The notes beneath the pieces are model-generated. The model searched no databases, had not been told where the DNA came from, and saw nothing but the letters and a program-made list of their open reading frames with translations. 64,000 nucleotides of DNA from contig JBLDXI010000102.1 of the NCBI GenBank assembly GCA_047495785.1, forward strand, positions 1-64,000. The letters run 5' to 3'. The DNA is from Lepidodermella squamata. Lineage: Eukaryota; Animalia; Gastrotricha. Below are positions 53,983-56,234 of the stretch, in pieces (the stretch's first letter is position 1; each line of letters begins with the position of its first letter). The position numbers and the translations under genes were made by a program.

Positions 53983-56234
53983 ATGGAGCTCGAACCTAGT
54001 TCATATGAGGCTGCCTTGTTAGAGGATGCTTCCCGTGTTCCCTTTACCACTGTCCCAATTACTTGTGCTTGGCAAAAATGGGACGTGGGCGGTGCCACTG
54101 TGGTTGCTTCAGGTGCGTCAAATGTAGATTTTCCAAACATGCTCCCAAAGCGCCTACGACCAAATCATCAATCTGTCGTTGAGCGGGATCGAATGCGGAG
54201 GGGTGTAGATCATACGCGGGAACAAATAATATGTAAAAAAACTGGTCGCCTTCGACGTAAGCATCGACATGTTCAGGAACGTAAAGCTCAACTAGTCAAA
54301 TGTAAGTGTATTCGCCGCTGCTTCATGAAGTTTACCCTTCAGTCGCTGACTAAGATGCAAAACGATCTTAATGCCGAAATTGAAGAGAACAGTAAAAGGG
54401 TATTTGTCGCTCGCTATGTCAAAACCAAAAAAACGTCAAGCCGGAGGAAAAGATATGTTTATTGTTTACCTCACATCAGCGCTATTCCGGAAAGTAACCC
54501 CAATCTTGACGAAGCCGTTGAGGTTTGTAGGGCATTCTTCCTTGGAGCCACATGCTTGAGCGAGAAATTCATTCTTTACACGCTTAAGAATAAAGTGGAA
54601 GGCGCGATCGTTAAGCAGGATATTAGAGGGAAGCACCCGCACAGAAATGGCGTAAGTCAGATTCAGTACAACGAAGTCTGTCGCCATATCGCCGCTGTTC
54701 CTCGAGTGCCTTCCCATTATACTCGACAGAAATCACGGAGGCTTTACATCTGGAGGTGTTTTTCCAAGCTGTCGTTATTCAAAGATTACATACGGCGTAA
54801 GGAAGTCGAATGGGCTGAGTATCGTCATCAAAAAGATGATTACGAAGCGGGAAAACTTCGGACTAGCGGAAGCGGTGTAATATCACCTCCAAACGAGCCA
54901 GCTAAAGCTGTAGGAAGAACAACGTTTTGCAATATCATGAAATCAAATTTTCCTCAACTATCATTTTTCATGCCAAAGTCTGACAGATGCCAAACGTGCA
55001 TGCGGTAAGTTTCCACTGACATGTCCAGTAACGCACTGTGTGGAAATGTTCTGTATCTATAGGTTCGAACAGCTATACCCACCTTCACAGCGGAGAAAAA
55101 ATACATCCTTCCAAGCCCATCTGTCGCGTAAAAATGGAGCCCGAAAGTCAAGAGATGATGACATTGAGCGAGCGCGAAAATCCAATGGAGAAATCATGTG
55201 TTGCGAATTTGATTTAGCAAGAAATTACGAGACCCCGTGCTGCTCATTTCCCTTCAAATCCAAGTTTCAAACCAGATTTTTCACAATATTCGATAATGTC
55301 TCCCGAAAGACTTATGGCTTTTCATGGGACGAGGATCACGGCGGAAAAGGCGGAACGGAAATAGGAACTTGCATTTACAAATTTCTGACTGGTATGATTG
55401 CGCCTGAAACTCGCGTGGTTTACTTATGGTCAGACCAATGCGGCTCGCAAAATAAGAACAACCTAGTTGTATCCGCAATTTTGAAAGCTTTGCAAAATTC
55501 AAAAAATAACCTTGAGTTTGTACACCACAAATTCCTTGTCAGTGGACACTCTTTTATGCGTGGGGACGTTGCTCATTCTCTAGTTGATCACGAGGTGAAA
55601 AAGCGTGGTAACGTCCTCTCAACTACCGAATGGAGAGATGTTATTCAATCTGCTTATTCTGATCGCAACTTCACTTTGACGGAGCTCCGATTCAATGACT
55701 TCTTTAAATTAAGAGAAGACAATAATCAAGATGACACCTTTGGTAACCGATTCACTGATTTGGGGCTGAAAAAGTCTGCTGTCACATGGCTTTTTTATGA
55801 GAGGTCTAACGTAGAATTGGTTCGAACACGATCAACTTACGACGACTTGGAATGGGATAATCACTACGCAAAACCTAGTTTGAATGAGAAGCCATTCGAT
55901 TGGACACCACAACAGGCGTATCATGAACACCGGATGATTTTGGCTAGCAAAATGAAGGCGATGTTTGGTAAAAGTCTGATGCAAAAGTTTGTGCTTAATA
56001 TATTCTATTTGCTACACAGAGTGGCTAAAGGAGGGCGTGCTGCCTTTCCGAGACCTCGACAATTGGACGTCAATGGCGAAATCCCATTCAGAGCTTCGCC
56101 TCAAGCCCGAAATCATTGAGAAAAAGCGACAGGAAATTATAGATCGATATGCTATGGTTATCGAGGAACACGATGAGATTGTCGAGCAGGACTACGTTCA
56201 GTGCGCTTCCATCCCGGAACTAAATGTCGATTGA
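53983..56234 (+). CDS. Sola1-type DDD transposase, about 713 aa (exons 53983-55004, 55063-55967, 56020-56234)
   Basis: Motifs CKC..RC, VCRAFFL, DIRGKH, SHYTR, PKSDRCQTC, CEFDL, WDE..GGKGGTEIGTC, WSDQCGSQNKN, HKFLVSGHSFMRGD; 58-bp and 52-bp GT-AG introns keep the frame. Confidence 0.88.

Follow-up and report, generated by a model that had tools for sequence, protein, structure and literature searches.

The closest described system is Sola1, represented by Sola1-1_AP of the pea aphid (Bao et al. 2009; clade E.10, PMC3985635), whose transposase has an N-terminal Cys region followed by an RNase H-like core. The RNase H-like cores of Sola1-1_AP, Sola2-1_HM and Sola3-1_HM are printed in supplement file 5 of Majorek et al. 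2014 (PMC3985635), and clades E.10, E.12 and E.13 are the profiles of Sola1 to Sola3 (Muszewska et al., PMC5751038). The target described as a hallmark of Sola1 is AWWT/AWDT (PMC3845634, citing Bao et al. 2009). A very large member has been published from Ectocarpus, where Sola1-1_Ec32 is a 21.5-kb Sola-1 element with an accessory gene and nested TEs (PMC12477816).

The locus described here lies in a 64,000-nt stretch of Lepidodermella squamata DNA (the window), inside a 40-kb insert bounded by terminal inverted repeats (TIRs). Its predicted protein shares with Sola1 the order of an N-terminal Cys region and an RNase H-like core, the DDD triad and the common blocks FDL...TP, WDE..G.KG..EIGTC, SD.CG.QN.N and H.FL..GH..x.D. 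It is 31% identical to a Sola1-1_AP-like protein and, if the outer TIRs are its own, it also shares a 4-bp target-site duplication (TSD) at the outer ends. Unlike elements of the Sola1-1_AP type, it shows at most 37% identity to any representative, sits on the longest branch, and carries substitutions at two invariant positions, a 28-aa N-terminal insertion and two short introns; the TSD reads ACGA and not AWWT, and the enclosing element measures 40 kb as against a few kb. The likeness to Sola1-1_Ec32 is in architecture, a Sola1 transposase in a very large TIR-bounded element with non-transposase genes and unrelated nested TEs, whereas our element is hosted by an animal and is roughly twice the size. 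The additional gene also differs, being a NEMP-family membrane protein with further ORFs here and a ParB-methyltransferase in Sola1-1_Ec32; with one copy, it is candidate cargo.

Mobile elements resident in rDNA include the R1/R2-type LINEs and the piggyBac-like Pokey in Daphnia 28S. Our insert resembles them in lying within an rRNA gene and inactivating that unit. It differs from them in its superfamily, in its site in the V4 region of 18S, in giving no sign of site specificity, and in a contig depth over the gene of about 51, which is not rDNA-like.

The preliminary description had joined three ORF pieces through two short GT-AG introns into about 713 aa. Reading the sequence and splicing it by script reproduced this model: the pieces join in frame into 2142 nt, that is 713 codons and a stop, with introns of 58 and 52 nt.

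53983-55004, plus strand: exon 1, 340 codons plus 2 bases
55005-55062, plus strand: intron 1, 58 nt, GTAAGT...TAG, phase 2
55063-55967, plus strand: exon 2, RNase H-like DDD catalytic core (Pfam DUF7869)
55968-56019, plus strand: intron 2, 52 nt, GTAAAA...CAG, phase 1
56020-56234, plus strand: exon 3, C-terminal tail, stop TGA at 56232-56234

A stop-free run of 713 sense codons makes a chance ORF impossible. In alignment with relatives, the spacing across the first junction, from the D-C-x2-C motif to the invariant core His, is that of the family. Splicing at the second junction recovers the C-terminal family motif at the correct spacing from the conserved Tyr: the relatives have Y....PIS.AKK.DL..LCK.G.IP, and here exon 2 ends in ...ILASKMKAMF and exon 3 starts with WLKEGVLP. 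This motif is absent from the reading that retains intron 2. Both predicted introns are supported by the sequence and by homology across both junctions. The tail encoded by exon 3 terminates in an acidic stretch, as it does in relatives. All homology searches and structure predictions were run exon by exon.

In Pfam, exon 2 matched DUF7869 just under the threshold (25.2 bits against a cut-off of 26). NCBIfam gave noise only and no real match, and a word-index protein search with exon 2 gave no match. An exhaustive HMMER search with exon 2 among 1.8 billion representatives returned 3783 of them at E<=1e-3 and 1310 at E<=1e-10, with a best E-value of 1.5e-37 and an identity ceiling of 37% across all matches. 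The full-length matches are "uncharacterized" animal proteins of 600-830 aa from insects and a sea urchin, with DUF7869 as their sole above-threshold Pfam domain. Atlas feature neighbours were arthropod DUF7869 clusters and one unnamed cluster commonest in rotifers.

The three printed Sola cores were compared with the family through short diagnostic peptides, not as whole cores. The consensus of 46 sequences reproduced the Sola1-1_AP blocks (FDL..VL.TP, YYKRK..YN.T, CY.W.E..GKRG..EIGTC, YSD.CGGQNRN and HKFLE.GHT.ME.D). One relative, P0116, matches four of the five Sola1-1_AP peptides in full and the remaining one with a single change, and another, P0117, carries both peptides of the second Sola1 (E.10) sequence in Majorek et al. 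2014. Alignment of the window protein with P0116 gave 31% identity over 208 aa (E 4e-28); by the same short diagnostic peptides, neither Sola2-1_HM nor Sola3-1_HM was recognisable in the window protein. Since P0116 is also above the DUF7869 threshold, DUF7869 (PF25273) covers the Sola1 catalytic core, and our literature search found no paper that mentions DUF7869. A quick tree built by maximum likelihood placed the window protein within the family, where its terminal branch was the longest, at 1.56 as against 0.48 for the median. The assignment to the Sola1 type, made beforehand from the sequence, thus finds agreement among the HMM search, the alignment across the family, the peptide linkage to Sola1-1_AP, the homology over the two splice junctions and the RNase H-like fold described below. 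We consider it very probable that the locus is a real, intact Sola1 transposase gene.

The motifs CEFD, WSDQC and GHSFMRGD, which hold the three candidate catalytic aspartates proposed earlier, are all encoded in exon 2.

55211-55213, plus strand: codon of D391, in CEFD, D50 of exon 2
55433-55435, plus strand: codon of D465, in WSDQC, D124 of exon 2
55565-55567, plus strand: codon of D509, in GHSFMRGD, D168 of exon 2

All three fall in conserved family columns: in an alignment with 45 relatives, the columns of D391 and D465 are invariant and that of D509 is 98% conserved. The core also retains the invariant H360, D374, P399, W429, G437, Q470, N471 and H503 in the 46-sequence alignment. Of the 52 core columns that are conserved at >=80% among the 45 relatives, the window protein departs from the consensus in 20. 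Two of the changes, Y405F and N413F, are at columns invariant in all 45 relatives, and G469S and E507R are further departures from conserved core columns. Judged from the alignment, these departures may stem from a distant lineage or from somewhat relaxed constraint.

The AlphaFold (AF2) model of exon 2 had a pLDDT of 89.5 and a pTM of 0.89. In it, D391 lies on the first strand, D465 immediately follows strand 4, and D509 is at the beginning of the helix that comes next. In a Foldseek search of the PDB with this model, all top-ranked matches were RNase H-like (PIWI, NurA, a terminase nuclease and HIV/ASV integrase), and the HIV/ASV integrase cores matched at a probability of 1.0. The model and its structural matches support an RNase H-like fold for the exon 2 core.

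Upstream of the core, the first ~100 aa of exon 1 are disordered and unconserved; the AF2 model of exon 1 reached a pLDDT of 71, falling below 50 over most of residues 18-92. The N-terminal regions of 17 full-length relatives align colinearly with exon 1 (BLASTP E 5e-14 against P0004 and 2e-13 against P0002), which holds the 28-aa insertion relative to the family. The conserved region of exon 1 comprises C107/C109/C113, RG215-216, H235...SHY...R248 and F328-PK-D334-C336-C339. Within it, the invariant residues C109, C113, R215-G216, H235, S244-H245-Y246, R248, F328, P331-K332, D334, C336 and C339 are retained. C109, C113, H235, H245, C336 and C339 vary little or not at all across the 17 relatives, which bears out the Cys/His motifs noted upstream of the core in the preliminary description. 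In a fold search of the exon 1 model against the PDB, the best match was no better than E 2.6. Weak sub-threshold RFX/winged-helix matches in two relatives give only a hint at the type of DNA-binding domain.

The gene lies within an insert that breaks a minus-strand 18S rRNA gene in V4, and the 18S sequence continues directly beyond both TIRs.

21872-23052, minus strand: 3' part of 18S, rest of V4 to the 3' end, its last 4 bases being the left TSD
23049-23052: left copy of the TSD, ACGA, 4-bp target-site duplication
23053-23216, plus strand: left outer TIR, 164 nt
23053-63476: TIR-bounded insert, 40,424 bp
63324-63476, minus strand: right outer TIR, matching the left at about 95% identity except for a 10-bp indel
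63477-63480: right copy of the TSD, ACGA, 4-bp target-site duplication
63477-64000, minus strand: 5' part of 18S, Rfam model positions 121 to about 643, to the start of V4, its first 4 bases being the right TSD

The terminal 25 nt of the TIRs are identical at both ends and occur nowhere else in the window, where 0 occurrences are expected by chance. The length of the TSD had been taken to match Sola, and a 4-bp duplication does fit. Its sequence does not, as ACGA departs from the Sola1 target AWWT/AWDT, which, for a single insertion site, is weak evidence either way.

Rfam identifies positions 1-23191 of the window as rDNA. Positions 99-22081 form a perfect rDNA palindrome, with essentially identical arms of about 11 kb and a 58-nt centre at 11061-11118. 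The arms hold two units tail to tail, each with an 18S 3' end, 5.8S and 28S, and with 5S on the opposite strand in the spacer. The palindrome may be an assembly artefact; its spacer is, we presume, unlike a sequencing adapter.

In X1 (Logan contigs), the one DNA run that contains the gene, three exact contigs with depths of 51-54 span 53499-57100. The gene region drew little else at >=80% likeness in this run, with two 200-nt bins at about double depth. The transposase gene looks single-copy. Its contig depth of about 51 is like that of locus-specific single-copy contigs, so the gene is absent from some rDNA units. The insert itself is seemingly present in one rDNA unit only, judging from the single-copy-like contig depth over the examined part.

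The sequences on either side of the gene are of another kind.

52001-53595: dispersed repeat in high copy, adjoining the gene block on its upstream side and outside the gene
56650-57730, plus strand: LINE-derived fragments, directly downstream, with depth rising from about 57200

These flanks (52001-53595, and from about 57200) draw hundreds of diverged contigs, with a summed depth of about 470 up to 5400 per 200-nt bin. Over 52001-53595 the summed depth is 470-3260 per bin, as against about 51 over the gene, and nine contigs diverge after 53595. Downstream, the ORF at 56674-56916 has an endonuclease-type SDH motif and that at 57209-57730 a LINE-like C-terminal tail, the latter being high copy in X1; the motifs behind the LINE assignment were recognised by eye, Pfam being blank for 57209-57730. 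Retroelement debris extends over 56650-59400, with one scanned ORF matching RVT_1 (E 2.6e-8). Unrelated repeats thus border the gene block (about 53596-56650) on both sides, and its original neighbourhood has been disrupted.

Repeats are found elsewhere in the insert as well, including MITE-like foldbacks of 183-338 bp and two larger nested units.

24142-24398: MITE-like foldback
25862-26102: MITE-like foldback
27863-31288: nested TIR-bounded unit, 3.4 kb
32526-34522: nested TIR-bounded unit, 2.0 kb
43008-43190: MITE-like foldback
44066-44403: MITE-like foldback
46964-47192: MITE-like foldback

The 52-nt arms of one foldback are perfect, and for two of the small elements there may be a 3-bp duplication (AAA and TTT). 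Much of the 40 kb of the insert is made up of later nested repeats. A fragment of ~140 nt at 50707-50849 is inverted and 86-90% complementary to the 3' part of 28S (4535-4681).

A NEMP-family gene is present between the outer TIRs at 47619-48716 (Pfam PF10225, E 1.2e-19). It is part of a stretch on the plus strand upstream of the transposase (44585-48716) in which two ORFs that Pfam does not match, one of 552 aa and one of 206 aa, accompany the NEMP-family protein.

Among the insert ORFs of >=90 aa, Pfam revealed no other DNA-transposase domain, only the NEMP-family gene and one reverse-transcriptase fragment. Within these limits, the transposase is the only intact one between the TIRs, as had been claimed. 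The claim that no closer TIR pair surrounds the gene also held, since the inverted-repeat scans found only the outer TIRs above chance flanking it. Scans with seeds of 8 and 13 gave no above-chance inverted pair within about 5 kb of the gene, and when 53300-54000 was aligned locally with the reverse complement of 56235-57500 the score was 23, equal to the shuffle mean of 23. Over the whole insert, a k=13 inverted-seed scan yielded the outer TIRs and one ~70%-identical pair only. This diverged inverted pair, at about 40280-40790 and 60513-60904, is 20 kb apart, has no sharp ends and brackets both the NEMP gene and the transposase. Its two members are probably copies of a dispersed repeat, and they may instead be an old inner TIR pair.

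The best explanation overall, which we hold to be reasonably probable, is an intact Sola1 transposase that, we infer, acts on the outer TIRs of the 40.4-kb insert. The locus encodes a complete 713-aa DDD transposase of the Sola1 superfamily from three exons, with a conserved C-terminal tail predicted to span the junction of exons 2 and 3. The conserved Cys/His region of exon 1 would presumably recognise the element ends, and D391, D465 and D509 of the RNase H-like core would coordinate the metal ions used in cleaving DNA and in strand transfer. If the protein is made and active, its putative substrates would be the 164-nt TIRs at 23053-23216 and 63324-63476. Whether the transposase is the autonomous enzyme of the outer-TIR element is, in our estimate, an evenly balanced question.

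An unlikely alternative is that the transposase comes from a smaller nested Sola1 element with eroded or displaced ends, the outer TIRs being those of a different, possibly non-autonomous element. The single-copy block is only about 3 kb long, between high-copy repeats (to 53595) and LINE fragments (from about 56650), and the ends of a smaller element could have been separated from the gene or lost. An insert full of nested MITE-like elements, the mismatch of the outer TSD with the AWWT preference of Sola1 and the diverged inverted pair surrounding the gene would suit such an origin too. The scans speak against it, as no inverted pair rises above chance within about 5 kb of the gene and the whole-insert scan adds to the outer TIRs only the ~70% pair without sharp ends. 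The continuations of the flanking repeats also do not reappear across the gene. We had considered the gene block as an insertion into one repeat copy and rejected this, the continuations seen in other contigs being absent elsewhere in the window.

A second alternative, which we judge quite unlikely, is that the gene looks intact but is a remnant that has ceased to move anything, either dead in catalysis or DNA binding or retained by the host in some other role. The gene is apparently single-copy, with no copies at >=80% likeness in the X1 DNA run, its branch is very long, and N413F, E507R and G469S are non-conservative changes at otherwise invariant positions. The many nested repeats collected by the insert, and TIRs that differ by about 5% plus the 10-bp indel, could likewise be read as signs of a remnant. 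Against this, the three catalytic Asp and the invariant residues of the core and N-terminal region are retained, the 713-codon frame is open across two precisely kept introns, and the fold, predicted with confidence, appears normal. The activity of the predicted transposase is nevertheless not assured, given the 20 departures among 52 conserved core columns and the position of the gene amid nested repeats.

That the protein belongs to another RNase H-like transposase family, or is a chance ORF, is very improbable: the sub-threshold Pfam match and the blank word-index search would allow it, but it is effectively refuted by the 1310 relatives at E<=1e-10, the direct linkage to Sola1-1_AP-like sequences and the signature blocks common to Sola1 and not to Sola2 or Sola3.

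Returning to the intact Sola1 transposase that we favor, a wider reading is possible, which we put forward tentatively. The whole 40.4-kb block would be one autonomous Sola1 transposon, moved by the divergent transposase, with the NEMP-family gene and neighbouring ORFs as lasting cargo, and it would be a member of a lineage of giant gene-carrying Sola1 elements peculiar to this one animal. If this is true, the 40.4-kb element exceeds the published 21.5-kb Sola1 and landed in an rRNA gene.

Giant Sola1 elements have already been published, and what stands out here is the 40-kb size, the animal host and the location in 18S. The annotation of DUF7869 also gains, as this "domain of unknown function" corresponds to the catalytic core of the Sola1 transposase. 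The Sola1 family acquires a well-documented, unusually divergent transposase, which is the candidate enzyme of a 40-kb element holding a nuclear-envelope-type gene. If the link between this enzyme and the TIRs is true, the locus would offer a testable system for the mobilisation of very large cut-and-paste elements with passenger genes in an animal.
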